Below are positions 3,240-29,018 of a stretch of DNA of 33,609 nucleotides, piece by piece. The position numbers and the translations under genes were made by a program. Source of the DNA: Hyphochytrium catenoides (lineage: Eukaryota; Protista; Hyphochytriomycota); contig FLMG01001812.1 of the NCBI GenBank assembly GCA_900088475.1, positions 1 to 33,609 of the forward strand, given 5' to 3'. Under the pieces are notes generated by a model, which saw only the letters and a program-made list of their open reading frames with translations, was not told the DNA's origin and made no database searches. Each line of letters starts with the position of its first letter. Within the stretch, counting starts at the first letter, position 1.

Positions 3240-3722
3240 GGTAACGTCAGAGTGCCAGGGTCCCAAGAGCTTGATCTTTAGGTAGCCCGACCGTTCATTA
3301 GTGTAGTCGCCTCCTACCCTCAGGGGATGTGTTGAGTACCGTTCGGGCGGATTTCCGCAGGCTGCTGCTGCTTGCTTCAACAGCTTGCCCACGTCCTCCG
3401 CAGAAAAGTGATCCCGGGTCGGCCCTATCGCTAACCTCCCGCTCGTCACCTGGATGACCTCAGGCCGAGTGAACCACCTTCAGAAGACAGCCCGTTTTGA
3501 CAGGGCACAGAAGAGAGTGTCCTGACCTCCGTAAGCGACGTTGAGACCCTCTCCCGATCTGGTCGTCGTTTTGCCGCCGCGTAAATCGATAGAGACTGCT
3601 TCTGTCCTAGTGCTATCTCTGCATGGTCTGCCGGCGCAGTCTCAAAGCTGTAGGTCGTTGATCCTTAGAACGTTGGAACCATATCCTCTGCAGTAAGCAG
3701 CGAAAGCGCCAAGCTGCTCAGT
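3240..3722 (-). pseudogene. DIRS/Crypton-type tyrosine recombinase pseudogene
   Basis: Frameshifted minus-strand translation gives EQLGAFAAYC...VSIDLRGGK/DQIGRG...LCPV...DVGKLLKQAAAACGNPPERYSTHPLRVGG...IKLLGPWHSD. These match the YR motifs K-x-DQ-x-G-x-G, CPV, H-x-L-R-x-G-G and LG-R-W-x-SD. Stops, frameshifts and an apparent internal deletion are present. Confidence 0.85.
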
Positions 3723-3905
3723 TGACTGTTTCTACTGCGCTGCACGGGTGTAGTCAGCTGTGCCTCCCCTCTCCGTTGCCACTGTGTCTAGGTTCTGGGC
3801 AGGGCGCCAAAGGCTGAGGCTGATTGAGCATACCTGAGACTGAGGAGCGAGGTCAGCGTCATTCTCTAACCGCGCCAGGGAATCCTACTATCCCCTGGAT
3901 ATTTC
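3721..3905 (-). repeat. Dispersed repeat X, copy 1
   Basis: Reverse complement contains aatatccagggga...ccctggcgcggttagagaatgacgctgacctc...tcagcctcagcctttggcgccctgcccagaacctagacacagtggcaacgga, which aligns with the copies at 16303, 24334 and 32104. Confidence 0.8.
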
Positions 3906-6900
3906 GCCTAATCTAATTTGCCTACCTAGATGTCAACCTACCTGCCAGTCCCAGTGGCAGGCGATTTACTGCGGTAGCTTGGTATCAGGCTAAGCATTCG
4001 TGACTGACCATAGTCCTTACGCAGCGCCAGCTTCCTGTCAGTCTTCTAGATGCCAACCTCAACCTACTGCTTAGGACTAGTTTGCCGGAATAGGTGCTAG
4101 ATCGGTTCCAGGCTTGGACCAGCCTAGTATTACGTACCAGCATTAATGACTGACCCTACCTCTATGCAGGACCAACCCAGATGTGCGCTGAGGCGTCGGC
4201 ACTAAGTCAGGCAGCACCCAGAAGCGAGCTGAAGTAATTGACCCTAACGCTAAGCGTTCAGTGGCAGGTCAGCCACGCGTGCCAGAAGAAATGCGCTGAT
4301 ATTATGTCTTAAGGCATCGTTTTCAACAGTACCCTTTCTCTTGCTCACCTACCCGAGAGTTATGATGGTCTTGTGTGCCCTTTCTTCTCCTCCTCTCTCT
4401 CCGAATGTGATTGCTGAGGAAATCAGCAGTTATGATGGCTCCTTTCCTGTCTTGATGGTGGACCGGGCGTAAGACAGACCAAGACTTCGTAGCGTGCTTC
4501 TTTCTTTTGTTTATGCTTGCTTCTATCCTTAACCGGGATGAGAGGGGACATACACTCAAGGGAGGTGAATGGCAGACGCTAGGGAGCTCGACATTCGAAA
4601 AAAGTCAAAAGCAGCGAGAGAAAGAAGTACCGGGGCTAGCTATTGATGGCTCACACTATACAACCTATTAGAGGCTAGTAAGATGGCAAGAATATCACAT
4701 GAATGAGAGCGCAAAGAGGAAGACGGCAAAGGTAAAGAAGTTCAGAGCAACAGGTATGAAATGTCTAGTAGGAGCAAGCGGACGGAAAGGAAGGAGAGTA
4801 TGAATGAAGTTCGACGAGACAAAGAGCACAAACGGGAAATAAGAGAGGAGACGGAGGAGGGCCTCAAGTAAAACGAGACACTGAGTTCGGAGGGACGAGG
4901 GATAGTGTTTTTGTTCAGCACTTATGATACCCAAAGCAGCAGCGTGAGAAGGAGAGATGGCTGAATCAATTGTAAGAGTACCACAAGCTAGGAGAGCAAA
5001 ACAGGCTAAGGAATAAAAAGTAAGAAGAGAAAGCGAAGCTCAAGGTAGTCAGCTGTAGGAAAGCTTACAAGAAAGCGGAAAATGGTGGGCCATTTTCTAC
5101 GACAAGGGAGCGTAGCCAAGAGGGCGAAATGAAGGAGATGGGATCCGGCCTTCACCCGTACTTACTGAAAAGAGCCGAACAAGAGTGAGCCAAGACGGAG
5201 ATCAAGCTGAGAGAACCACCCAAAAGGTGCAGACACGGAGGACAACAAAAAGAGCAAATGTTACGACCCTAAGAAGCAAGGCAAGTGGGACAGGGAGGGA
5301 CTATCCAGAACGAGTGAAACATGCAACAGCATACAGATTACTTATCTCCCCCAAGCAATAGAGACACCAAGGGAGATTGTATTTAGAGGCAACGACAAGA
5401 GATCACCAGGACGAGTGCAAGATTAAGATGGAGCAAATGAAAGAAGGAGTGGTAGAGTGCACTGAAGGAGGCAACCAAGCATATATATAAATGTATAAAG
5501 AGAGAGAGAGAGACACACATCTTAAGAAGAGAGGCAGGTAGTGAGAGGTGGTGAGGCGGAAAGCAATGGTCCATATTATAGGCTCTCATTACAGGGTAGA
5601 ACTAGACGAATTATTTAGGAGTGTAGAAAGGGAAAAGGGAGGCAGTGAGGAAAGAAGTCGGAAGACCGAAGGAAGAATTGGGACGTGAGGAAAGGAGAAA
5701 GAAAACAGCGAGAAGGAGAGAAAGACAGACAGAGACCCTATGCGAGAGGGTCATGGTGAAGGTGATGGGAGGCGAGTCAACCTGAGACGAGAAATCTTTA
5801 CTCTCCTTCTCTACCTCTCCACTCTATCTAATCAAAGTTCCCAGGGGCGAAACCCAATTCTGACATGATTTCTCCTGCTTGGCTCTATGTCAATCTATCA
5901 TAAAGAAGACAAGGCTGAGTTATGAATAGTATCCGCGATGCTATTATGAAAGCGGTTGGGAGAGTAGCAGCAAGAGGAGAGGAGTAGAGGAAGGTTCATG
6001 ACTGAGGAGGGAAAAGGTCGTAGACATTGTACGAGGAGAAAGAGAGCGTGCAAGGAAATAACGGAGGAGAGGTACAGCGAGAAAACGAGGAGAAAAGAAG
6101 GTGAGGGAGTCTGTGACTGGAGAGAGAGAGAGACGGGAAGAGAGACAGACACACGGGAGAAAGGAGCTAGTGGAGAGAAGTTGATGACTTTTAGCAGAGG
6201 TAGATGTTGATGATGTCTGAAGCTCTGACTGGATGAACATGTAACAAAGGGACCTTGATGATGATTATGTGTCAATTGGAATGACTGTCACTCTTGGTGC
6301 TCTATCTGCGACCAGCGACTGGAAGAAATAACTTGGGAGAAGGAGAAAGAGAAGCAAGAAAAAGGCCTGCTGCAGGAGGAAGAGTAAGAAGAAAGGCAGT
6401 CATGGTGAAGAGAGATAAGGTTAGAGAAAGAGGGAAAGACCCAGCGGTAGATAGCAAAGAAGAGGCTAGGTAAGACCGAAAAGGGAAGGCAGAGGGCCAA
6501 TATGAAGAGGAACGAGAGATTTAGGGTAACATAATAGGGAGAAGAGAAAGAGAGTCAAAGTAAGAAAGCAAGGCGGAACAACGGAAGAGACAGGAGGCAA
6601 ATCTGGAGAAAAACAGAATGATTGATCAGTATGAAGGCGCTTCGTCTTGAGAAGTTAATTCATATTTAACTCCAGATTCCCTCTTTGTTGCGCCCTCCAC
6701 CTCCGCTGTCAACGAAAAAAGCAAACTTGGCGGTGCCTCGAGCCTAGCCTGCCACCTGAAACCTTTGGCTGCCTAAGATGATGAAAGTTGAAAATGGAAG
6801 GCTCTCAACTTTGCAGCAGTTTGTGATGCACATGGGAAAAAGGCTCTGGGGGAGGGGGTGGGTTGTAGCGAGATTGCATCGCGAGGAAAGGCACGGAGCA

Positions 6901-8115
6901 CTCCCTTAGAAGCCACATACATTGCATCCCTCTCGCTTTAGCTCTCAAACGTTATACGCGGTCTGATATGATCTCTTCTGTTTCCCCGCCCTAGTGGTCC
7001 TGGCCTGAATATCTGTACAAAGATAGAACCTTGTCAAGGATAGGTTGGAAGAGAGAAAAGGTTTAGAGAGAGAGAGAGGGGTACAAGAAGGCCAAGATGG
7101 AAAAGAGAGGAGAGTAGCAGCTCACGAAGGTGGAGGAATCAAAGAACAGAGACACTTACACAAGCAGATAAGACAACCGAGGATAATCGAGACTGCAGAA
7201 GTATGACGAGCAACAGACAAATAGAGAGGAAGTCAAGAAGAGCAGCAGAAGGGACATAGAGAGAGAATAGAGAAAGACCAAATTAAATGATCAGTAACAG
7301 AGTCTTCATCGTGTCGCATTAACTTACATATCGTCCTCAAACACTTGCCCCTCCGATAGCAATTTGACATGTGGCCGCTGTGTCCGAGGTGGAGAAGTAA
7401 CTCAGCAGATGAGTATATGAACCATCTGAGCAGCTCTGACTCTGACTCATCATACAGGACAGCAGTTTCTACAGCTACCTCAAGTGCTTCTCAAGTGCTT
7501 CATCCCCGCTCGTAGAGTCTCGTCTGACTGCACCTTTCTTCTTGGGAGTAACAGCAGTTGTTGGGGCGCTGGGCGCCGGACCTTATCGCTGCTGCTACGG
7601 GATTGGGCAGTCGCTGTGATGGGGGTAAGATGAAGCTAACAAAGCGGTGGCCCGACATTTGTTCGATTGGAAGTAGCATTTTTTAGTGGTGGGTGTCATT
7701 ACATTCATCATGGAAAATGTTCTGATGCTCAGCAAGCACTGCTTTAGTACACTCCCAGGTCTTACGATAAAACAAGATAAGCCCAATAAAGAGTCAATGC
7801 ACTTAAATTCTCGACACTACCGTCCAGCTTCTAGGACCTTCTAAGACTCTTTCATCGATCATCAGATACTATGGAAAAGCAGAAGGCCCTTGATAAAGCG
7901 CTATGTGACGTTGAGCAGGCCAAAAAACCCGGTGTAGGTGCATAGGTCAAGAAGTAGAGATTTATATTGAAGGCCCAGGAGGATTTGACGTGAGCAGCAC
8001 AAGGGTACTTAACGTGAGCAAGGGAAGGAGAGAAATGTTAGCTTTTAAAACACCAGGGCTACAGTGGAGGCGACTCGCCGTCTACAGTGAAGGTCCCATC
8101 ATCCATTATCCATTA

Positions 8116-8215
8116 TGTGCCTCCCCTATCCGTGCTGCGCGCTGAGTCCATCTTCGTTGTTCTTCTGAGCAGCAGGCGGCAGACGCTGAGGCTGACCGAG
8201 CAAAACTGAAGATAG
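8116..8215 (-). repeat. Dispersed repeat X, partial copy 2
   Basis: Reverse complement ttttgctcggtcagcctcagcgtctgccgcctgc...cacggataggggaggcaca matches the X core. Confidence 0.75.
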
Positions 8216-8392
8216 TTTACCTTGGAAGAGACACCCAAGAAGGTAGGAGGATTTTGTATCATAAAAGCATCTTGTGAGAGGGAATGGTTCAGGTTGGGCA
8301 GCAACTTACCAAGAACAACAACAGTAGTGCAAGACAATTTAGGGCTTCGTCGTCGCCTGTCCAGAAAAAGAGAACGACTAATAAAACAACTA

Positions 8393-8458
8393 AAGGCGCT
8401 ATGAAGCTGACCTTGTCAACAAGTTCATTATTACTAAGGCGCTATGAAGCTGACCTTG
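8393..8458. repeat. 23-bp perfect direct repeat (period 43)
   Basis: aaggcgctatgaagctgaccttg at 8393-8415 and 8436-8458. Confidence 0.9.
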
Positions 8459-8624
8459 CCAGCTTCTTGATCCCGTGTCGCTCCGTCAAGGGTCCGTCCA
8501 CCCGCCCAATTTCAGGCCATGATGCCTCACTCCTCTGATAAGCCATAAGTTTCCAAAGCATAGGTAGCGTTATCCTGCACTTCTTTTTATTATGTTCCAC
8601 ACTGCTGCTGATAGTGCGATGATG

Positions 8625-8777
8625 ATGTCCTCTTATTGCAAATAAGATCATTATCACTTGACAATATCCGTCATTCAATCGTATCAAATCTAGTATTTGA
8701 TAGATTGGATGACTGTCTGAGAGAGGGAAATCTCCTCTCTCTCTCAGTTTGTCTTTTTCCCTCTCTCAGTGACGACT
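8625..8777 (+). repeat. Split direct repeat A1 (left terminus)
   Basis: 153 bp, identical to 12320-12472 except for one substitution (ctAgt vs ctGgt). Confidence 0.97.
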
Positions 8778-9563
8778 GATTCAGCTACTACGCAGCTCAG
8801 TCCTCCCTTTTGAGAGAAGTCGGCGACAGCTCCAACCCTTACGATTTGGTTAGTGGTTGTATCACGAAAGGGAACTTTGGTCGGCCAAAGGACAGCCGGT
8901 GAAGAAACATTAATCACCAGAAGGCCACGAAAGCGCAGCATTCTTTCCACTGCCAACTGTCAGTAGCTGTAAACTCTTCCTCTTTACTGCTATTCTGGCA
9001 GTCGAGTCTGTCTTCTTCTTTCATCTTCCGAGACATCAACAACGTTAGCACTTAGGTGGAAACAACGACAGGACTTTACGGCGACAGAGAAGTGGGACAG
9101 AAAGATTGCGGTGTGCTTCGCATTGCGAAGAGCAAGTGGTCATCAGCAGAAGCAAAGCGGTTAGTAGCAAACGAAGATAGTCGTCTCATTGGCGACGAGG
9201 AATCAACGCGAGCATTGAGGTATCTTTTGTGCTTCCGCTCCTACGGTCAGCGTAGAAAAGCGGCGGTATCTTGATCAAACGCTTAGCTGAGGAATAAGCG
9301 CCTGGGTGCCATCGGGAAAGGCACAGGACACGAAAAAATCACAGCACTAAGGAAGTGCAACACCTCCAAACAACGAATGCTGCTGGAAGCTGTTGTTGTG
9401 AGAACACATAGTAGAGCTGGAGCCTGCCAACTCTAGAGATCAACGCCCAAGGACCAGAGAGAGAATAGTGGAGACATCTACCAGCAGTAGCGCTGTTGCT
9501 GCTCACTAAGGGTGGCCAAAGAGGGGCCATTAGCTTCTCTAAAAAGAGCATCGTCGTCACGAT

Positions 9564-11927
9564 TTGGAGAAACGCTTTCCGTCAGTGAAGCCTGTTTCAG
9601 CCTCGGGAGGAAAAGAAACGGGTTCACTAACAACGATGGGAGGCAATGGAGATCAGTCTGTGCCACTGTATCAAAAAGTGAGAGTACGGTGGCGAGAGTG
9701 GGTTAAAATTGGTGCTCCGAGAAAAATGATTGGCTGGATCCGCAATGGTGTCGAGATACCGTGGAAAGATAAGTCTCCAGATAAGTTTGATCATGGGTAT
9801 TGGTTCCGAGTGGACGGTGTTTCCCGAGAACAATGTCAGCGAGAGATTGAGAAACAAGTAGCCATGGGCGTTCTAAAAGAGGTATCAGAGGACCAAGCGC
9901 ATTGTGTTAGCTCCTCGTTCTTCATTCCAAAGCAAGGTTCATCTGATGTCCGTCTTATCGCCAACCTTATTCCCCTCAACGAGCACGTCGAAGAGAAGGG
10001 GATGCAGTACGAGCGTATTCGAGACTTGACTGGGATGTACGCAGAAGGACAAATGGGTTTCACTTGGGACTTGAAGGATGGCTATCATATGCTGGCAATT
10101 AAAAAACGCCATCGCAAGTTCTTTCAGATCCGAGTTTTTGGTAAGCTGTATGAATATCAAGTCTTGCCTTTTGGCTGGTCTCGAAGTCCAGAGTTCTTCG
10201 GACGTTGCATGAAGATTGTTGCCCGGTGGATGCGCCGCAAAGGAATTAAGGTTCTGAACTACGTTGACGACTGGGCTTGTGTAGACGAGGCAGATCGCAT
10301 TCATCAGACGCGGGACACGGTTGATCGTCTCCTCGGCACTCTGGGATTGACACGGCACCCAACGAAGGGACAATGGGAACCAAGCACAAAATTCGACTTC
10401 CTAGGCTTCACTATAGATCTGGACACTGGAGTCATCAGCTGTCAAGAGAGAATGATTGATAAGTTAGCTGAAAAGTCCAAGCAGCTAGAGGTACATATGC
10501 GTCGAGATGGTCGATGGGTCCCGAAGAGATTACTGGGCAGTTGGATTGGCATCATCAACAGCATGCGTCAAGCGAAGCCTTCCAGTGCAACACTGGTGCG
10601 GCCTTTCTACAATCTGCTCCGTCAAACTAAAGCATGGGATAGCAAAGTAAGGATAAGCGGACGCCTAGAGCGAACCGTCAAACGTATGGTTAGCCAGCTA
10701 CGAGCCCTTCCAGACACTGTCATTTGCCCCAAGCCCTGTGACTGGACAGTAACCACAGACGCATCCAAGGAGGACACCGGCGGCTGGGGCGCAACTTGGT
10801 CAAGTGCGAGCTCCAATCTCGAAGGAGAGATAATCTCAGAGGCTCTGCGGGGAGAATGGACTAAAGCAGAATTACAGCTTCCCATCGCAGTGCTTGAAAC
10901 CCGAGCTGTAAGACGTGCGCTGCAAGCGAGAGAACAAGTCGTGGAAGGACAAGAATGGAAAGTTAAAACAGACTCGATGGCGACCATGTGGGCCCTGCGG
11001 AAGAGGGCAAGTCCATCTGTGCGAATGCAAAAGGAGTTATATTCTTTGCTCAGATACTGCCTAAAGAAGAACATACCCTGGCCCCAAAGCATCGAACACG
11101 TTCCGGGAGAAGAAAACGAGATGGCAGACTACCTCTCTCGGTGGGATTCAACAAAAGAAGTTCAGCGGCTGGAGCAGGTACTTGCGTTGAAGACGGAAGT
11201 AGATTGTTTCGCAGAGGAGTGGAATGCAGTTCATTCCCTTCATTTTTCATGGCACACTACCAGGAACTCTGCTGGAAGAGATGGGCTCTCACAGAGCTGG
11301 AGGAAGCGTCTGTGCTGGTGGGCACCACCCTTTCCTTTGATCAATTGGACCTTAAAAAAGATCAAACAAGACGGAGCTCAGGGCATCATCGTCTGCCCCG
11401 AATGGCCAAGTGCAATATGGTGGCCAGTGCTGCTGGAGCTTAGTGACAAAAGGGTGTCCGTCAGAACCCAATGCGTCACATGGCACGAATCACATCCAAA
11501 ATTACCAAGCAACACTGCTGTCCCATCATCATGGCCTCTAATCGCCTGCAGGATTGGCGTCAACAAGAAAATTCACATAGCTCATGAGCAAGATCCAGTC
11601 CAGGAGACTCATATAGCCACCATGCCGCGGAGCACAGCCAACGCTAGCAATAGAGGCCAACAAGGCAGCAGCAACAACACTGACAACGAGCGACGGCTGA
11701 GACACATTAGTCATGACCCCAGCCTCATCACGAGTCTGAATTCCGATGGACCACCATCAGACAGGAAGATCAACCGAACAACACAAAGGACGAAGAAGGG
11801 AGACCCTTCCTCATCAGCAGGATCACAAGGACAAGTAGCAGCCAGCGAAGATCAGCACAGCAACAACAAAAAAGGAAAGGAGAGCCATCTTGGTAGCAAC
11901 GTCATTTGTTGCACCAACCAAGCTTGA
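9564..11927 (+). CDS. DIRS-type pol: reverse transcriptase - RNase H - adenine methyltransferase-like domain
   Basis: Uninterrupted 787-codon frame, first ATG at 9636. RT motifs: DLKDGY, LPFGWSRSP, YVDD (10260), FLGF. RNase H motifs: TDAS..GWG, LETRAV, TDS, HVPGEENEMADYLSR. DIRS MT motifs: DCFA, DGLSQSW, WWAPPFPLI, PEWPSAIWWP. The tail is low-complexity S/N/Q/T. Confidence 0.95.
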   Translation: MEKRFPSVKPVSASGGKETGSLTTMGGNGDQSVPLYQKVRVRWREWVKIGAPRKMIGWIRNGVEIPWKDKSPDKFDHGYWFRVDGVSREQCQREIEKQVAMGVLKEVSEDQAHCVSSSFFIPKQGSSDVRLIANLIPLNEHVEEKGMQYERIRDLTGMYAEGQMGFTWDLKDGYHMLAIKKRHRKFFQIRVFGKLYEYQVLPFGWSRSPEFFGRCMKIVARWMRRKGIKVLNYVDDWACVDEADRIHQTRDTVDRLLGTLGLTRHPTKGQWEPSTKFDFLGFTIDLDTGVISCQERMIDKLAEKSKQLEVHMRRDGRWVPKRLLGSWIGIINSMRQAKPSSATLVRPFYNLLRQTKAWDSKVRISGRLERTVKRMVSQLRALPDTVICPKPCDWTVTTDASKEDTGGWGATWSSASSNLEGEIISEALRGEWTKAELQLPIAVLETRAVRRALQAREQVVEGQEWKVKTDSMATMWALRKRASPSVRMQKELYSLLRYCLKKNIPWPQSIEHVPGEENEMADYLSRWDSTKEVQRLEQVLALKTEVDCFAEEWNAVHSLHFSWHTTRNSAGRDGLSQSWRKRLCWWAPPFPLINWTLKKIKQDGAQGIIVCPEWPSAIWWPVLLELSDKRVSVRTQCVTWHESHPKLPSNTAVPSSWPLIACRIGVNKKIHIAHEQDPVQETHIATMPRSTANASNRGQQGSSNNTDNERRLRHISHDPSLITSLNSDGPPSDRKINRTTQRTKKGDPSSSAGSQGQVAASEDQHSNNKKGKESHLGSNVICCTNQA

Positions 11928-12295
11928 AATTCACGCTGGACGTTATCGCCACGGTTTCACAATGTCAACCACCGACGCTGGACCTGCGGTAGCGATGCTG
12001 CTGCCAAAGAGTATTGTTATTATGACCGACCGCTTGGTCATACTACGAGTAGCTCTTCTTCATCTATGACTGCCATCTTCATCATCGTCTCATCTTCTAC
12101 CAATTCTACTTTTTAGTTGCACTTTTTATCACTCACCTTTCCTTTTCCTTCTTACACTTCTTCTTGCTGCTGGACCTGCATCCGCCCTTCAGCATCGCTA
12201 GCAACGATGTTATTCCCTTACTAACACCACATCTTCGCCCTCTTCTTCTAGGTGGGCGAGGGCGGGGTTGAAGCTGTCAAGCCGAGACGCAGAGG

Positions 12296-12322
12296 AAAGC
12301 AGACATTGTCTTCATGATAATG
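12296..12322 (+). repeat. Split direct repeat B1 (internal)
   Basis: aaagcagacattgtcttcatgataatg, identical to 12641-12667 and directly abutting A2. Confidence 0.93.
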
Positions 12323-12472
12323 TCCTCTTATTGCAAATAAGATCATTATCACTTGACAATATCCGTCATTCAATCGTATCAAATCTGGTATTTGATAGAT
12401 TGGATGACTGTCTGAGAGAGGGAAATCTCCTCTCTCTCTCAGTTTGTCTTTTTCCCTCTCTCAGTGACGACT
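12320..12472 (+). repeat. Split direct repeat A2 (internal)
   Basis: 152/153 identical to A1. Confidence 0.97.
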
Positions 12473-12640
12473 CCCGCCCTCCCACCGCTTTTGTCTTTCT
12501 TTTTTCCCTTGGAAGCTCTTGAACTTATTGGAAAACTGAAAAGGCGCAACGATGTCGATTAGCGCCAAAGAAATTACACACTGGGTTGGAGTTATTGAAT
12601 GTTGTCTGAACATCAATTCAACAATAAACAACAACGTTCA

Positions 12641-12667
12641 AAAGCAGACATTGTCTTCATGATAATG
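12641..12667 (+). repeat. Split direct repeat B2 (right terminus)
   Basis: 27-bp perfect copy of B1. Confidence 0.93.
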
Positions 12668-13518
12668 GCGCGAGATGGAGGACATGAGATTCTCTTCTAT
12701 CTATTGCATAAGGCAGTGACATCCAGGAGTCTCTAGTAGGCAGGCTTGCCAAGAAAGAAGTCGAGTACCGGCAGGAAGGCCATCTGCGTCCAAGCAAAGG
12801 TCTGAGGTCTTCTCGTCATCAAGCACTTTCATTCCCCATCAACTCAAGTGGCCAATACTCCTACCCGCTTTCGAGAGTTGGCCAATGCTCATACGTCCGT
12901 AGGAGAAGCCCATCCACCCTACACTTATGCTTTGTGCATTCTTCTGCGCTAAACTGCCATGGAGTTCCAACAACGATGGCCTGGGAAATTGCCAGCCCCT
13001 GCATCGATTGAGGTCGGCTGCATTATGATAGATGTTCCTTCCAATAATAAGAAAGGGTTTCTGCCCAATCAAGGTAAAGGAGGATGGAGTGTGATAAGAA
13101 CAATGATCGACTCACTGTGCAGACCGCCATGCCACAGGACCATCACTCTCTTATAACTACTTAGACAGAACTACCTTTGGTTCCAATGATGATGCAAGAG
13201 GATGGACAGCAAGCTTCTGTCTGTCGCAGGTAGCAGCTGATTGATGTACAATGCTTTTTATTGTACTTGTACGAGCTATGGATAATGTTAGAGCCCCAAA
13301 CCTAGTCCATCGGTCGAAAAAGAACGTCTGGGCTTTCTTTTGAAGTGCATTCTTGAGATGTAGTCCCTTTATGTCGAAGCCCCACCAGTGTTGCTGTTGC
13401 TTCTCTTGATGATCAGCTTACAATGGTTGCTATGACATAATGCTTCGCTAACTTACGACCGCAGACCTGCCATTTCAGAAGTTCTGTGGGTGCTGGGAAG
13501 AGCAAAGACGTCCATTGA

Positions 13519-15081
13519 ATGCGAAAGGGAGGAATGGCTGCACCGTCATCAGATACCTCTTCTTTAACTTCTACCCTTGGTACTGGTGCTGCTGCTGCTA
13601 CCGACCGCTTGCTCTTTCATATTCGATCTGCCGGAATCTGCTTTGGGCATCCGCATAATATACTGCACGGATCATCGCAACCTATCCAGACACCAACTCT
13701 AAACTTGCCAAACTCTAGTGGGACTGTGATATGCCACAAACCGAACTACAACTACAGAGCGAAGAATGGGACGTGGTGCGCTCAACGATTAATCATGAGG
13801 CAGGGACACTCTGGGCAATCTTCTTCTCATCGAACCCCTGTCGCAGCCTCTCGTTTATCGTCGCGGTCTCGAGCGGTAGATGGGACTACCTGCGCCTTCT
13901 TTAGTTGGCATCAAGACAGCCTTCAAGATCCAATCCAGGAGATACGTAGAATACTCCTGATCTCCGGAAGTCCTTACGACACTGACTCTGAAAGCACATT
14001 CAACACTGAAGAGACGCTGTCTAACCGCGTCATTGTTATCAACCGCTACGATTGGTGCTACTACGATGATCGCGGTGGTTGCCCTCCTCGGTATGGAAAA
14101 CAAAGCATTGAAGACGGCCAATGGGGATCGACATGTGCGCTGGTGGACTATGCTAATGCGACAGACCTATTTCAACCTTCTTCCGGCAACACTGCTTACA
14201 TCGAGCAAGCACTTTCCCCGTTGGAAAACGGTCTCTCGGAGGTGGTCGGTGTTCGAATGTTTCTAAAGCGTCATGAATATGAGTTTGGGCGCTTTGGACT
14301 GAATGCTGACAGGTCCGAAGTCCAATGCTTTTTGTTCTTCTCGTCAGATATGAGCTTCTACGACGCTACTTTTGAGGGCGAGCCTGTATAATTTCAAAGG
14401 ACAGTGGCCCAGATTGTTGCGGAGGATGGTGTCAAAAGGTTCTTAGGCTTTGGCAGGTTATCCTTGATGTTTCCGAATGGGTATCCTACGCCAAGCTCCT
14501 CAGATATGTTGCAGTTTTCAGAACAAGAGACTGTGATTGACCTTGAATCTGTGAAGAGAACGATTACACTCGTGTGCCCCAAGCTTCGCGTCGAACCACC
14601 GCTGGACAAACTTGTCGTCCGCTTGTTAGACTGCTGCATGATGACCTTTCTCTCAAGCCTTGGTGCTAAATTAGCTGGGTTTTCCACCGTAGAGGAGGGA
14701 TACGTTTCTTGGCTGCTTCCGATTATAGCAAGGACGCTCCTTCAAGTCTTGACAGGAGTCTTGGCAAATATCTGACGGTGTATCAACCTCGCACTCCAGA
14801 CTCAGATAAAGTTGAGGGTCGTATCAAGCACTTCTTTTTTCAGCGCCACAACCTTGATGCTACAGACGAGGATGCCGAGAAGATTAAAGCCATGGTGGAC
14901 TTCCTCCTGGCCGAGGTCGTCCAGATTGCCGGCAGGTCAACAGTTGGTTTCAGTAAGAGACCTTATGGCTCCTTGTGATTTACGGATCGCGATTGCATTG
15001 GACGAAGAACTAGTCAAAGCCTTCCAGCGCTGCTCGCTACTATGGATTAACGAGGACAAGAGAGTCAGCACTTCAGATTAG
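13519..15081 (+). pseudogene. Disrupted gene: unknown N-terminal domain + C-terminal H2A-like histone fold
   Basis: ORFs 13519-14391 and 14404-14775 are in the same frame, separated by one TAA. Two frameshifts (~14740, ~14950) lead to DFLLAEVVQIAG...MAPCDLRIAIALDEELVKAF, which resembles H2A EYLxAEILELAG...PRHLQLAIRNDEEL. The lesions could instead be assembly errors. Confidence 0.72.
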
Positions 15082-16519: not shown

Positions 16520-18205
16520 ATACTGTCCTGCCACCGCTAACGACGTCTCAATGCAGGCGTTAATTCCGTCAGCCTGTAAGACAGGCTAACACACGGCTCG
16601 CCTCATACAGGTGTAGATTCGTCAGCCTGATAAAACGGCTAACACACGGCTGGCCTAAGACACTGGCGGTGTGCCCCGACTTTTTTTAAAACAGTCTAAC
16701 AGACAGCTCGCCTAAGTATATCCGTGCGCTCAAGAGAGGCTAACATACCCCTCGCCTCATGCAGGCGGCGTAGATCCGTCAGCTGCAGACTGGCTACCAG
16801 ACGGCGCAATTTGTACAGCTGTGGTCCGTCAGCCTTAGGACAGGCTCACATACTGTTCGCTTCTTACAGGTGCAAAGATTGGTCAGGGTAAATGTAAGAC
16901 AAACTAACAAACGACGACTTGCTTCATCGAGATGTGGCCCGCCAGCTGAAAACAGGCTATTGCACTGCTCGCGTCATCACACAAATGCGGTACGTCAGCC
17001 TTAAGACATGCTAACACAGCACGCTTCTTATAGGTGAAGATTGGTCAGCTTAAGACAGGCTAACACACGGCTCGCCTCATAATACAGGCGGTGTCCGCTA
17101 GCCGTAAGATCGGCTAATGCACGGATCGCGTCCTAAAGTTGTAGGTTCGTCAGCCTCGGTCGTCAGGATAAGTTAAGACAAGCTACCAGACGACGGCTCG
17201 CCCTACAGGTGGTCGTTCAGCCTTAAGAGAGGCTAACGCACGGTTCGCTTGTTGCAGGTGTCGATCCGTCATCAGCTTGATGCAGTACAGGCTACCACAC
17301 CGCTGGCTTCACACAGACGTGGTTCGCCAGCCTCAAGACAGGCTAACATAGCTCGCTTCTTACTGGTGTAGATCTGTCAGCTTAATAAGACAAGCTACCA
17401 CATGGCTCGCCTCATATGGTCTTTGTCCGCCAACCTGAAGCCAGTCTAAGAGACCGCTCGCGTCCTACAGGTGTAGTTTCGTTAGTTCGAGGCAGCTGGC
17501 AAGCGGCTCGCCTCTTTCTTACAGAAGTGGTTCCGCTAGCCATAAGACAAGCTTACACAGCTCACGTCCTAGAGCTGTAGATCCGTCAGCTAGGACATGA
17601 TAACCGACGGCTCGCTTCTTACAGCTGTAGATCCGTCAGCTGTACACTGCTAAGACCACGGCTCGCCTAATAATACAGGGGCGCTTCGTTGTCAGTCTTA
17701 CGACCGGCCAACAGACAGCTCGCTTCTTACAGCTGTAGATCCGTCAGCTTAGGACTGGTTAACACATTTTTCGCCTCCTACAGACATCGTCGTCCATGAG
17801 CCCTAAGAGAGGCCAGCGCACGGCTCGCTCCTTACAGGCCTGGCCCGCCAACTGAAGGCAGGCTACCATACGGCGCTCCATCAAGCTATTTTACGACAGG
17901 CTGATACGTGACTCACCTCATTTAGGCTTCACACGGGTGTAGTTCCGTCACCTCACTTTTAAGCGGCCCATTCACGTCTCGAGTCATTTATGAGAATGTC
18001 CGTCAGCAGGATTGCCGAATATAGCCATAGGTCCGGCAATAAAACCATGTCAGGCTAAGAACGTGCTCACCTCCTACAGGCGCAGGGCCGTCTAGCTCAA
18101 AAGAAGATAACGTAGGGCTCGCTTATTACAGGTGTACATCCGTCAGGGTGACAACGATAGGCTAACACACCGCTCCCCTAATCCAGGCATGGTCCGTCCG
18201 CTTCT
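16520..18205. repeat. Degenerate ~52-bp tandem satellite, ~30 units, dimeric higher-order structure
   Basis: Approximate consensus CCGTCAGC(C)TTAAGACAGGCTAACACACGGCTCGCYTCWTACAGGTGT(AGAT/GGT). The GGCTA anchor recurs at 16584, 16637, 16738, 16792, 16842, 17058, 17112, 17231, 17290, 17341 ... 18160. An outlier unit lies at ~18655-18695. Confidence 0.93.
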
Positions 18206-24844: not shown

Positions 24845-27508
24845 CTATATATAGCCCATTCTTCGAAGGCTTTCTCTCTCTTTCCGTAGCCGATCTTCAT
24901 GATTAGGAGAATCTCCTCGCTGGGTTGTTTGGTCTGCTGCTTCAACAGTAGTGGTAGACCGCAATAACGAATCCGTACTCTTCTTTCCCCCGCCCGTCAC
25001 TTTTTCCTGACAGGTAGAGGATATGTCAGTGTCGAGAGTTTTAACCTTCCCTAGGGCCGTTTGTGCTGTCAGAATTGTCCAATAGACCCATAACCTCCCC
25101 CTACTATCCCTGACACAGTCAGTAGGGCCCACCAAAAGCTCTGAAGGCAGAAGATACATTCTCATCAACTCGGGAACAGATCCTTGCATGTCTTTCGTCA
25201 CTTTCCGCATTGAGTAAGCGTAAAATGGTGCAACATAGGTCGAGAGATAGACCCCCGCAGCAATAAGGAGCTTGCAATTGCATGCCATGGGACTGCCGTT
25301 GATGGAGAAGGTAATGTCACTGATGCCCAGTGCCGTTGTATAAAGGAGTCCAGTATATGCCGCAATCACCACTTGGGCTGTTGTTACCACTAGACATCGG
25401 AGCCTATTATTAGGCACGCTGCCGTAGCAAGCCTTGCTCGTGATAGATGACACCAAGATGCTCAGCAGTATCAGAACGCCATAATTAACTGCTGCGGCAG
25501 AGCCCATAGATAAGTCAAAAACGCTAGATTCGGAAAAAGCTCCCTGAGACGTGAAGGAGACGCGCAGTGTAAGACATTCGCTATACAGGGCCACCAGGCA
25601 TGCGATGCGCAAGTAGGTGATCATGGCGCCACTGGGTCCTAGGAGCATGCAGTTACTGCCAAAGCCTGAGAGAAGAAGACTACTGGAAACTGACAGATGT
25701 TCAGTCATCATCTTGACGAAAGCAGTTTGACATGCGGCTATCACTGCAACGAGTGCCATTAGCTCTATAAGAAGGCTGGCAATATAGACTAGGACAGAAT
25801 AGGAGTTAGGCTGGCCTGAGGTCTGGTGTAGCTTTACTTGGACCTGCAGCCCGCCGTACTCCAAACTCTTGGCTGCACGGGTAAGCTGCGGCTCCTGAAT
25901 CAGCATTGAGCTCTCAATCTGCAGGCTGAGCCAAATGATCTCATCAAAGGCAGAAGAGATATTATACCTCGTCTTTGATGCGACATTGCTGAGGAACAAA
26001 ACGCGGCGACTCGGTGGCTGCCCTTTCTCCAACGATTCTCCTACCCCACTGCCGGTGTTATAGCACTGACTAAGAAGTCGAGTGATGTTGAGCCCGCTCT
26101 TGAAGTTCTTAGCTGAACATGTGTCTTCCTGCAAGAATAGTGACAAGCCTGTCGTGCTCGGGATGCCATTGCAGCTGGATCTACAAGATGCGTCACAGTA
26201 GATGATGCTATCGATCGTTGAAAGGACGTCCGCAGTAAAGTTAAGGCCACGTAGAGTTTGACAAGCTCTGTTCCGCGCCAAGGGTTCTCGTCCTCTGTAT
26301 AAGCGCAAAGCATTGGACGTATTGAGTACGAAAGGAGCCAGGGATGAAGAAGAAAGGGAGGAGACAGGAGAGAGTGTAGGCGAAGAGGCGCGGAACTCGG
26401 TCCTGAGACTGTTATAGTCTCCCATCGCAAAGCATTGGATGGCATGCCTTAACACCACAGCCTTCGCGTCGGAATAGAACATTGAAATACCGTCGTCTTT
26501 CGTCGATGCAAAAAGGAATGCCCATGCGGTCGTGACAATAGCCAGACTACCCTTCCATCCTCTCCCATAGTAATTGAAAATATTCCCTGGGACGCTCACA
26601 TAGTCCAGTTGGAGACCATGATCACTTACCTGACCTTGTCGCTGACCCGACATGCCGCTGTAGGCCGTATATAAACCTGAAGCCCAACGCCCACTAGCAT
26701 GCTCGTTGAAAAGAAGAGTGGGAGATACCCGAGAAATGTACTCCAGAGCACGGCGAGGTTCTCCTTGGGCATACCGAAGACATCGTGCATGATCTTGATC
26801 GAACGCTGAGTTGCATTTTGAGCTCTCCTGGAGACAAAGTTCATCGAGTTTCGACATCTTATCATAGTCTGCTGCAGTTATATTGAGTGCAGCACGGCGC
26901 ATCCAGAAGTATTTGCTAATCGTCAGGTTGCATACGCAGAGGGCCGCGTTGACATTGCCAAAGACGGAGCTTGCACGATCTGCCTCACGCTCTGTGATGA
27001 GAAAGTCATCGTAGAAAGACCATGTCGGCCCGCTGTCGTTAAGTGGCATCGGTTTGGGGGGACTGGACGATGAAATCCAGACATCTGAGAGCTTCCTGTT
27101 ATCACGTCTCACTTGAAGTTCGACCTGCGGATCAATAGCCCAGCCATCGATTTTCGACGCCAGCGACCAAGAATCAGGCCCGAGACTCAAAACAGCAATG
27201 GCAATGTTGTCGATTGTTGACTCCAGCGCAGAAGGTGAGAGGGTCGCATCAGCTGCAGTGGGGAAATAGGCAGGGATAGAGGAAGAGGAGGCGGAGGAAG
27301 AAACGAGGAGATTGATTGTCTCACTATAGCCTGTCAGGTTACGGAAGCTGCTTTCAAGCTTATGGATCTCGCTATCGTCGGCCACCTTCATCGTCCGTGT
27401 AATGTGCGACGGCAGGGGCCGAAGAAGAAGAGTACCCGCGCCCAGTAAGGCGACAATCAGGCTGAAGGCCACAGACCAAGTCATAAGCATGTGATTTGCA
27501 GCCACCAT
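24845..27508 (-). CDS. Uncharacterised multi-pass membrane protein (~887 aa from first ATG)
   Basis: Stop-free frame of about 2.7 kb. It has an N-terminal hydrophobic anchor (WSVAFSLIVALLGAGTLLL), a large Cys- and NxS/T-rich region and about 5-6 C-terminal hydrophobic helices. The frame stays open to 27625, so the true start may lie in an upstream exon. Confidence 0.82.
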   Translation of the reverse strand: MVAANHMLMTWSVAFSLIVALLGAGTLLLRPLPSHITRTMKVADDSEIHKLESSFRNLTGYSETINLLVSSSASSSSIPAYFPTAADATLSPSALESTIDNIAIAVLSLGPDSWSLASKIDGWAIDPQVELQVRRDNRKLSDVWISSSSPPKPMPLNDSGPTWSFYDDFLITEREADRASSVFGNVNAALCVCNLTISKYFWMRRAALNITAADYDKMSKLDELCLQESSKCNSAFDQDHARCLRYAQGEPRRALEYISRVSPTLLFNEHASGRWASGLYTAYSGMSGQRQGQVSDHGLQLDYVSVPGNIFNYYGRGWKGSLAIVTTAWAFLFASTKDDGISMFYSDAKAVVLRHAIQCFAMGDYNSLRTEFRASSPTLSPVSSLSSSSLAPFVLNTSNALRLYRGREPLARNRACQTLRGLNFTADVLSTIDSIIYCDASCRSSCNGIPSTTGLSLFLQEDTCSAKNFKSGLNITRLLSQCYNTGSGVGESLEKGQPPSRRVLFLSNVASKTRYNISSAFDEIIWLSLQIESSMLIQEPQLTRAAKSLEYGGLQVQVKLHQTSGQPNSYSVLVYIASLLIELMALVAVIAACQTAFVKMMTEHLSVSSSLLLSGFGSNCMLLGPSGAMITYLRIACLVALYSECLTLRVSFTSQGAFSESSVFDLSMGSAAAVNYGVLILLSILVSSITSKACYGSVPNNRLRCLVVTTAQVVIAAYTGLLYTTALGISDITFSINGSPMACNCKLLIAAGVYLSTYVAPFYAYSMRKVTKDMQGSVPELMRMYLLPSELLVGPTDCVRDSRGRLWVYWTILTAQTALGKVKTLDTDISSTCQEKVTGGGKKSTDSLLRSTTTVEAADQTTQRGDSPNHEDRLRKERESLRRMGYI

Positions 27509-29018
27509 GACTCCTTTTTTTTTCCACTTGGTGTTGAAGAGTGACACCACCAGGCTCGTTGCCACCAGCCCTCTTCTTTGCTGGAACCTACTATCCGGAG
27601 TGTTGGACCAAAGAAGTAGCCCCTGCTATTGACTGTCGCGAATAACACATCTAGTCATACCGTTGACAATGTGCGATGAAAAATGAGAAGCGGCAGAAAG
27701 CAAATGCAAGAAGCGGGGCCTCTCACGGTACCTCCGCCTGCGTTCTAACCAAGGTAAACGCCGCAGCTCCCTGCTGAAGTCGAAGGTCCCAAACCTGGCG
27801 GGGAGAAGGAAGGCACGGGGCACGGCAAAGTGATTACTAGGAACTCGAGGGACTGTTGGTTACAAATGAGATTGAGGCTGGGGGCCTATGAACAAACTGG
27901 GCAGGAGAGAGGAGGAGCGACGGTACGAAAGAGAGAGAAAGGAGCCTGGAGAACACTAATCCTCCTTCAATTTGTGGAGGAACGGCGATCTCGTAGTGCC
28001 CACAGACACCAAACACCAACGTTAGAACTGGATCAAAAGGCCAGGCCTAAGAAATTCTTTCCATATTCTTCTACAGAACAGCCCCAAGAGAACGGCAAAG
28101 AGCTGAACAAGCAGACGATAATTCGTCCACCATCAAAACAGCCCAAAGCAGGTAGAAAAGACAGGGTCTGAGAATCCAAGAAGGCTGTTCACCATCCTCG
28201 AAAGGCCGTTTCGCTGTGTGTAAGAAAAAGAATCAACGTTTGTAGATCAACCAATCAATGGGTTTTGGAAACTTTCATAGCTAGTAGTATAAAGAGATGC
28301 TAACATAGGAATATCATGGGGCTGCTTTGCAGCTTTCTATAAAATGAAATGTTTCGGCAACGGAAGATGGAAAGATAACTTATGTACTCATGGCCGTTTC
28401 TCCCTCCATAACGCCCACAATCCAGTATGATCATCGCGCCCTTTCGTTCCTTATTCAACTAAGCTTAACTTTTTGTTAGGCGTGGGTCACTTTTTGCTGT
28501 TCTTTCCGTAGCACTCTTCCTTCTCCATGCTTCAACAAGGTCTCCCCCTCTCTTCTTTCTCCTTTCTCTTACTCTTCTGTGTCCTCTTCAAGCTTCTTTG
28601 ATCGTTGTTCCTCTTACCCTATCTATCGTACGTAGCGACAGGCAAACGGGATGCAGGGCTGTTCCAGGGCGTTAGTCACCGCTGTGCCAATCTTTCTTGT
28701 TCAACTTACTTCATTTTCTATGCCAGTAGGTGTGTCTGACAAACCAATAATAATGGAGAAAAGAGATTTGGAGGAGCCAGCAGGTGACCAGCCCCACGGA
28801 GCAAATCATAAGGAGCCAACTGCAAAAAGGCATTGAGACGATTAGCAAACAACGAGAGACAGAAGAAATAGCGCATCCTGGCGCGAAACAAACACCGGAA
28901 ACCACCGAGCAGCCGAAAGATAGCCATAAGGAAAAAGCACGGCGCGAGGACTGAAAGAGAGGCTTTCAGTCTGTTTTACCCTAAAGAGACATAAGAGGCG
29001 CATTCACTGGTGGGAACT

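Follow-up and report, generated by a model that had tools for sequence, protein, structure and literature searches.

A retroelement family with split direct repeats and its own reverse transcriptase, and without a tyrosine recombinase, in Hyphochytrium catenoides

Introduction

How can a retroelement of an order that integrates by means of a tyrosine recombinase (YR) stay mobile when it encodes no such enzyme? The question is raised by a stretch of 33,609 nucleotides from the protist Hyphochytrium catenoides (GenBank assembly GCA_900088475.1, contig FLMG01001812.1; hereafter the window), in which positions 8619-12667 are occupied by an element of about 4.05 kb with complete split direct repeats. 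The element carries a single long open reading frame (ORF), pol, for reverse transcriptase (RT), RNase H (RH) and a methyltransferase (MT). An earlier note, made from the letters of the sequence, had described it as a young element of the DIRS order with an intact RT-RH-MT polyprotein, no recombinase and no intact gag, belonging to a recently mobile, semi-autonomous family that either obtains integration and gag in trans or uses a different integration enzyme. The analysis reported here favours, with a probability of roughly 0.62, a family derived from PAT-like retrotransposons that keeps RT, RH and MT, is devoid of YR and ORF1/gag, and is integrated by a YR acting in trans. The likeliest donor would be a YR-bearing sister family residing in the same genome.

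Anatomy of the element

Comparison of the repeats bears out the split direct repeats reported in the earlier note, in the order A1 ... B1A2 ... B2. The A repeat (A1 at 8619-8777, A2 at 12314-12472) is 159 nt long with 2 mismatches. Counted from 8625, the two copies are identical at 152 of 153 positions; the second mismatch lies inside the 9-nt overlap of A and B, which reads ATGATGATG in one copy and ATGATAATG in the other. The B copies are identical at all 27 of their 27 positions, and B1 abuts A2, which creates the internal B1A2 junction. The start of A1, at 8628-8645, holds a perfect 6-3-6 palindrome. In mid-A, at 8716-8746, there is also a GA/TC-rich imperfect hairpin, CTGAGAGAGGGA AAT CTCCTCTCTCTCAG.

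The features of the element are as follows (C numbers denote contigs of this genome; L058 and L061 are database relatives described below).

8621-8627, plus strand: target-derived GATGATG adjoining the element on its 5' side; the closing ATG is common to it and the B end
8628-8777, plus strand: A1 repeat, opening with the palindrome CTTATT GCA AATAAG, which is kept in the YR-bearing sister family
8778-9563, plus strand: non-coding 5' region without an open frame, the positional counterpart of the putative ORF1 of the sister family
9564-11927, plus strand: pol ORF, 787 aa, with its first ATG at 9636
10038-10415, plus strand: RT core, aa 159-284 (Pfam RVT_1, E 3.3e-14)
10746-11057, plus strand: RNase H, aa 395-498 (Pfam RT_RNaseH, E 5.5e-5, 23.7 bits for a cut-off of 24.8; same domain in relatives)
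11085-11633, plus strand: Dam-like MT domain, aa ~508-690 (alignment with PF05869-positive relatives; model and fold search)
11634-11927, plus strand: low-complexity C-terminal run-on of pol, not conserved in relatives, with the stop about 40 codons earlier in C3923 and C1416
11485-12282, plus strand: 798-nt stretch unlike the sister family in DNA and protein (blastn against C3817 and C4396; YR profile and Pfam negative)
12296-12322, plus strand: B1, internal copy of the right end (repeat comparison)
12323-12472, plus strand: A2, internal copy of the left end (repeat comparison)
12473-12488, plus strand: C-rich motif CCCGCCCTCCCACCGC directly 3' of A2, conserved after A2 in C3817, L058 and L061
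12489-12640, plus strand: spacer from A2 to B2 (position between the repeats)
12641-12667, plus strand: B2, the right end, terminating ...ATGATAATG (repeat comparison)

Pol is uninterrupted, as had been claimed. It is open throughout its 787 codons, whereas stops recur every 40-70 codons in all frames of the flanking internal regions, and both the YVDD box and the acidic residues of RNase H are visible in the translation. The RT-RH-MT order is likewise confirmed, RT and RH by Pfam and the MT by other means, since a Pfam search with the Pol protein makes no MT call. Indeed, residues ~508-690 align with the PF05869 (Dam) regions of four relatives (P0001, P0006, P0007 and P0015), with the invariant positions D..A, W, PP and P..W kept, and a structural model of the domain (mean pLDDT 67) finds its best matches, weak ones (E 1e-3, TMq 0.5), among S-adenosylmethionine-dependent adenosine methyltransferases. 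In DIRS elements the 'MT' is usually a domain of the Dam type, as a 2026 preprint confirms. The window copy alone is without 21 nt after 11147, in frame and within the MT, that all other copies have; with them, the protein would read ...SRWD-ARHQWQI-STKEV, which fits the clade pattern LSR-x5/6-W-x-[LI].

Split direct repeats together with an MT define the PAT-like layout (PMC4157794, PMC6681497), in agreement with the earlier note, and derivation from PAT-like retrotransposons of the DIRS order is the best reading of the element.

Absence of a recombinase and of gag

No search for a YR or a gag inside the element was positive. With the YR of the sister family as query, tblastn gives no match in the element or anywhere in the 33.6-kb window, and the YRs and ORF1/gag proteins of five database relatives, which detect each other at E values of 1e-4 to 1e-37, give none in the element. 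A clade-specific hidden Markov model (HMM), built from the YRs of these five relatives and applied without any filter to all open pieces of 20 aa or more, reaches a best E value of 0.64, and Pfam finds nothing on 20 open pieces lying either side of pol. The longest open stretch in the three-frame translation before pol is 72 aa, and between the end of pol and B1 there are 368 nt. The ORF1 of the sister family, used as query, picks up about 20 aa in another copy of the window type (L004, E 0.11) and no match in the window copy. Thus, tblastn, the clade HMM and Pfam agree with the earlier note that the element has neither a YR nor an intact gag, and the spliced or divergent YR that would have spoken against it was found neither by the HMM or Pfam nor with the YRs of relatives. 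Pfam also reports no rve/integrase domain in Pol.

The sister family and the fate of the lost genes

Protein searches of the genome reveal a sister family whose Pol is about 50% identical to that of the window. At C3817 (L048), its MT region is followed by a YR (Pfam PF00589, above cut-off), then by B1A2 and B2. The catalytic residues R, HxxR, W and Y of this YR align with those of the relatives' YRs, and its identity rests on Pfam and on this alignment; a sequence search of the PDB with it returned no relevant match. A 3' fragment of the family at C4396, with 80% DNA identity, holds a second copy of the YR with 2 stops, and C4479 covers the 5' part, where two frames are open for 192 and 133 aa, the latter being RGG-rich. 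Together these two frames make up a putative ORF1, for which Pfam gives no family. The assembly contains no other DIRS-type YR. The other YR genes of the genome were considered as possible helpers and are unlikely ones, since with a DIRS-YR profile they show weak box-II matches only.

On the minus strand of C3817, a 1018-aa frame (4440-7496) is open from the RT core to the YR, with the RH/MT homology in another frame that has 4 stops. A Harbinger/PIF-type DDE_Tnp_4 transposase ORF of 396 aa (7904-9094, minus strand) lies directly upstream and a subtilase gene downstream.

When the window is compared with C3817 by blastn, the similarity ends at 11484, the end of the MT, and resumes at 12283, just before B1. 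In the interval, the window has 798 unrelated nt and the sister family 1300 YR-encoding nt, which argues for decay and shortening instead of a simple, clean deletion of the YR. A possible YR relic at 11839-12066 (+1 frame, ...IHAGRYRHGF..., resembling the HSLRHGF box of the sister) was rejected: its HMM E value is 1.3, other copies read RHGS or RHVS at this place and there is no DNA homology. The 5' region ahead of pol is roughly as long as its counterpart in the sister family; its coding capacity is gone. As relatives elsewhere are normally built ORF1-pol-YR, the ancestor is expected to have had both genes, and YR and ORF1/gag both seem to have decayed where they stood and to have become somewhat shorter, with pol remaining open.

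The lack of a recombinase as a family trait

In the assembly, of 61 Mb in 4759 contigs, the window locus is the one place where the element is whole. The other copies are pieces at contig ends, and all copy comparisons were made with such natural copies. Colinearity from the MT to B1 or B2, without a YR, is seen in four of them (C3923, C1416, C711 and C2741), which diverge by 3.3-4.3% among themselves and by 5-6.5% from the window copy. Nor is there an ORF upstream of pol in the 5' pieces at C4136 and C4413, whose sequence departs from that of the window by indels of 1, 2, 4 and 5 nt, as non-coding DNA would be expected to do. The fragment at C4261, an old and frameshifted piece of pol that has no termini, was uninformative. 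At C1721 (L008), positions 606-957 hold a solo A-x-B copy, matching positions 3698-4049 of the query only and preceded by GATGATG; it could have arisen by recombination between A1 and A2.

Logan contigs, built independently from three public DNA runs on this organism, were compared with positions 8000-13300. A contig of 2676 nt, colinear with 8748-11425, has a depth of 443, 5105 and 68 in the three runs, against 14-18, 213 and 2-4 for the flanks, and shorter contigs of high depth extend the colinearity to B2. By these depths, a majority variant with near-identical copies would be present some 25-30 times, a figure that derives from the k-mer depth of contigs and is no true count of copies. The window copy is a minority variant, about 4% off this majority, and occurs at roughly the depth of a single copy, as seen in a 345-nt contig with 2 differences. 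Contigs of two runs join 8836 to 11313 at about single-copy depth, skipping 2476 nt that comprise most of pol; the join, with only 20 letters on its shorter side, possibly marks an internally deleted copy.

These data bear on the outcome that the earlier note had named as fatal to its proposal, namely that other copies contain a YR and gag and that this copy is a single post-insertion deletion, and equally on an assembly chimera of a normal gag-pol-YR element. The fragmentation of the assembly, the breakage of all other copies inside the element and the confinement of the only assembled RT core to this locus would leave room for such an accident. We nevertheless hold it to be extremely unlikely: at least four other assembled copies and the Logan contigs of three runs, majority variant included, share the YR-less order, flank contigs with 0 differences enter both ends of the element (8000-8648 and 12640-13300), and a window-type contig of about single-copy depth spans 11871-12205.

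As to age, the near-identity of A1 and A2 and of the majority copies points to recent activity, the A repeats being a weaker clock than long terminal repeats (LTRs), since they are not necessarily reset in each cycle. The recently mobile family of the earlier note can thus be retained as a dispersed and probably recently active one. All sampled copies, across about 6% of divergence, are YR-less, which implies that this form went on spreading for some time after the loss. A family of extinct debris, in which every copy is left over from an old burst under an autonomous master of the same family, since lost, and pol is open for lack of time, would account for assembled copies that are 3.3-6.5% apart and in several cases carry stops, for the private MT deletion of the window copy and for the want of an intact helper in the assembly. 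It fits poorly, however, with a 2.7-kb contig whose depth is about 27 times that of the flanks, which implies many copies near-identical over kilobases, with a 787-codon frame kept open amid stop-riddled neighbouring regions, with the 152/153 match of A1 to A2, and with spread continued after the YR was lost. We therefore regard it as unlikely.

Target site and junctions

GATGATG precedes 12 of 12 independent 5' junctions of the two families, six of the window type, each with a different flank (window, C4136, C2888, C278, C711 and C1721), and six of the sister type, again with different flanks (C3856, C4479, C85, C1802, C4328 and C2901). Within the window family, GATAATG stands in this place at the internal junction and at all right ends, from which it follows that the GATGATG on the left is target DNA and not a copy of the element. 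With the target version on the left and the element version on the right, the crossover falls within the last three bases, ATG, common to the target and the B end. The right ends always stop at ...ATGATAATG and run into at least 7 distinct, mutually unrelated flanks, and no target-site duplication was found at the examined insertions. Such a pattern is that expected of site-specific recombination, which would here join a circular B-A junction to the target. A short shared trinucleotide is known elsewhere: DIRS-like families of Xenopus have TTT, and the metagenomic element L058 has AAT. That the element had inserted into a host gene was considered and dropped, no long ORF running over the joined flanks.

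The sequences at the junction are common to the two families. In both, B begins AAAGCA and ends GAT(G/A)ATG, and the first ~35 nt of A, including the palindrome, are nearly identical, against an overall similarity of the repeats of only about 70%. The junction thus consists of the B end ...GAT(G/A)ATG followed by the A start TCC(T)CTTATTGCAAATAAG, the A repeat of the sister beginning TCCCTTATTGCAAATAAGTTCAT, and a block around CCGTCATTC is also shared. At C488 (L009), positions ~1792-1984, a window-type B2 end (...CATGATAATG) runs straight into sister A1 and 5' internal sequence, so that one family has inserted precisely where the other ends. This hybrid junction shows that the machinery that inserted the sister element accepts a window-type B arm.

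A second shared sequence is the C-rich motif, CCC(G/A)CCCTCCC..., which stands directly after A2 in the window family, the sister family (C3817, minus strand), L058 (3433-3448) and L061 (6042-6056), the last two being only 24-33% identical in pol. In a further relative, L063, whose A2 was not mapped, a match occurs at 4303, downstream of the YR ORF. The motif occurs once in the 33.6-kb window. Probably it serves this clade as a conserved cis element of replication; no description of it was found in the literature searched.

Could the element integrate without any YR, for instance by annealing of cDNA ends to GATGATG microhomology at chromosome breaks, or by host recombination? The thought is natural for an element without a YR, the more so as target and B end are homologous at 8 of 9 nt. 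Yet break repair would be expected to yield truncations and variable junctions, whereas all copies examined have precise ends, and the target version of the core on the left with the element version on the right marks a defined crossover point. Moreover, the YR-encoding sister uses the identical target. Integration of this kind is, in our view, very unlikely.

Relatives and class membership

The best database relatives are metagenomic and 24-33% identical to the window Pol. Seven of the eight relative contigs examined have the order ORF1-pol-ORF3; in L061, which has split direct repeats, ORF3 was confirmed as a YR. The best match, L058 (protein P0001, 29% identity), also metagenomic, is complete at 4.1 kb: its A copies occupy 47-135 and 3345-3433 and its B copies 3324-3347 and 4130-4153, its one ORF codes for an RT/RH/Dam protein of 776 aa, and no frame contains a YR. 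It resembles the window element in the order of its split direct repeats, in its single RT/RH/Dam ORF, in the lack of a YR and in the C-rich motif after A2. It differs in belonging to another organism and lineage, in an A/B overlap of only 3 nt (AAT), and in a region before pol that is mostly open (138 and 103 aa), so that ORF1 may still be there. As the nearest relative of the window family has a YR, the losses of this gene in L058 and in the window family are independent.

The element shares with PAT-like elements (Pat1, Kangaroo, Toc3) the order A1 ... B1A2 ... B2, a polyprotein with RT/RNase H and a Dam-like MT, the lack of a target duplication and a short sequence common to target and ends. 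It departs from them in having no YR and no ORF1/gag, in its length of only 4.05 kb, in the non-conserved run-on of Pol and in the unrelated non-coding 798 nt found where the sister has its YR. The sister family, for its part, matches the window element in the order of the split direct repeats, the A start, the B end, the C-rich motif and the GATGATG target; it is set apart by the YR after the MT and the putative RGG-rich ORF1, and its assembled copies are truncated or frameshifted.

Membership can be read from these traits. For the DIRS order, the RT/RNase H relationship and insertion without target-site duplication at a shared sequence are present, and an encoded YR is absent. For PAT-like elements, there are split direct repeats and an MT downstream of RNase H, and the ORF1/gag expected upstream of pol is missing, with frame-breaking indels in a region that is nowhere open for more than the 72 aa given above. 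An Ngaro-like element would have split direct repeats without an MT, and here the MT is present. An LTR retrotransposon would show two full LTRs, a DDE integrase and duplications of 4-6 bp; here the repeats are split, and neither an rve domain nor a duplication was found.

SIRE, a non-coding derivative of VIPER (PMC6681497), is comparable in being a non-autonomous derivative of a YR-retroelement that keeps terminal repeats. It has no coding capacity, whereas the window family has a full RT/RH/MT ORF; the 787-aa pol thus excludes the window element from this type, and the solo A-x-B copy at C1721 fits it and is its direct analogue. Among partly defective LTR retrotransposons, the gag-defective BARE-2 depends on the related autonomous BARE-1. 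The likeness to the window family lies in a coding but incomplete element that spreads with the proteins of a relative; the differences are that BARE-2 belongs to another order of retroelements and misses gag alone, and not the integration enzyme and gag, as here.

Proposed mechanism and its standing

We propose that the family encodes and uses its own RT/RNase H/MT polyprotein, YR and ORF1/gag having been lost by decay. Its RNA would be converted into cDNA by the split-direct-repeat scheme, with the internal B1A2 serving as the model by which the B and A ends are joined. The resulting B-A junction would then recombine with a chromosomal GATGATG, the crossover falling in ATG and no target duplication being made. 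The recombinase would be supplied in trans, most likely by the sister family, which has a YR, the same target motif and a nearly identical junction. A cis-preference of the RT would presumably explain why pol alone is kept.

The trans supply of the YR, and of any gag function, is what we infer from sequence comparisons. This half of the earlier proposal receives indirect support from the YR-bearing sister with the same junction and GATGATG target, and from the hybrid junction at C488; nothing was found to support its other half, a different integration enzyme. The assembled partners look complementary, the window family having an RT and no YR, and C3817 an open YR frame and a broken RT. Tentatively, one may go further and imagine a stable 'RT-only' form of DIRS life, in which an RT/RH/MT that prefers its own RNA is kept while integration and gag are outsourced to a YR-bearing relative, and which would be recurrent, as L058 hints; this we hold to be possible but doubtful.

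Several observations count against integration in trans of a living family. No intact autonomous helper is assembled, and at C3817, where the YR frame is open, RT/RH is frameshifted with stops and the 5' end is truncated. The window copy itself may be impaired by its private 7-aa deletion in a conserved MT region. The selection test on pol gives pN/pS values of 0.19-0.67 that rest on 10-22 substitutions, only the MT core and tail (~160 codons) being available in multiple copies; for the RT core, the window is the sole assembled copy. The near-identity of A1 and A2 could in part be due to homogenisation during replication and not to youth, and the limit on reading copy number from depth, stated above, weighs on the same side.

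Other features of the window

Part of the left flank (8000-8350) is repeated, with a contig depth 10-25 times the single-copy level and loose ends at 8023, 8109, 8171 and 8209. The left flank also has 24-nt tandem units at 7973-8020 and a 26-nt pair at 8393-8461. Two long ORFs without a Pfam family lie elsewhere in the window, at 24845-27565 (minus strand, 906 aa) and 13519-14391 (plus strand, 290 aa). A tblastn search for a DIRS-type YR at 16520-18205 found none.

Significance

Surveys that define DIRS elements by a YR near an RT or Dam ORF, such as one with a 3-kb window rule (bioRxiv 10.64898/2026.05.21.726589), miss lineages of this kind and would file them as 'orphans'. No description of an RT-retaining, YR-less family of the DIRS order was found in the open-access text searched. 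The integration of YR-retrotransposons is poorly understood, and here the replication module, in the window family, and the recombinase, in the sister family, are naturally separated. The shared junction and the defined 7-nt target amount to testable recombination substrates, in which a natural single-base marker, G versus A, places the crossover within the last three bases. The family would thus be a useful natural system for working out how YR-retroelements integrate.

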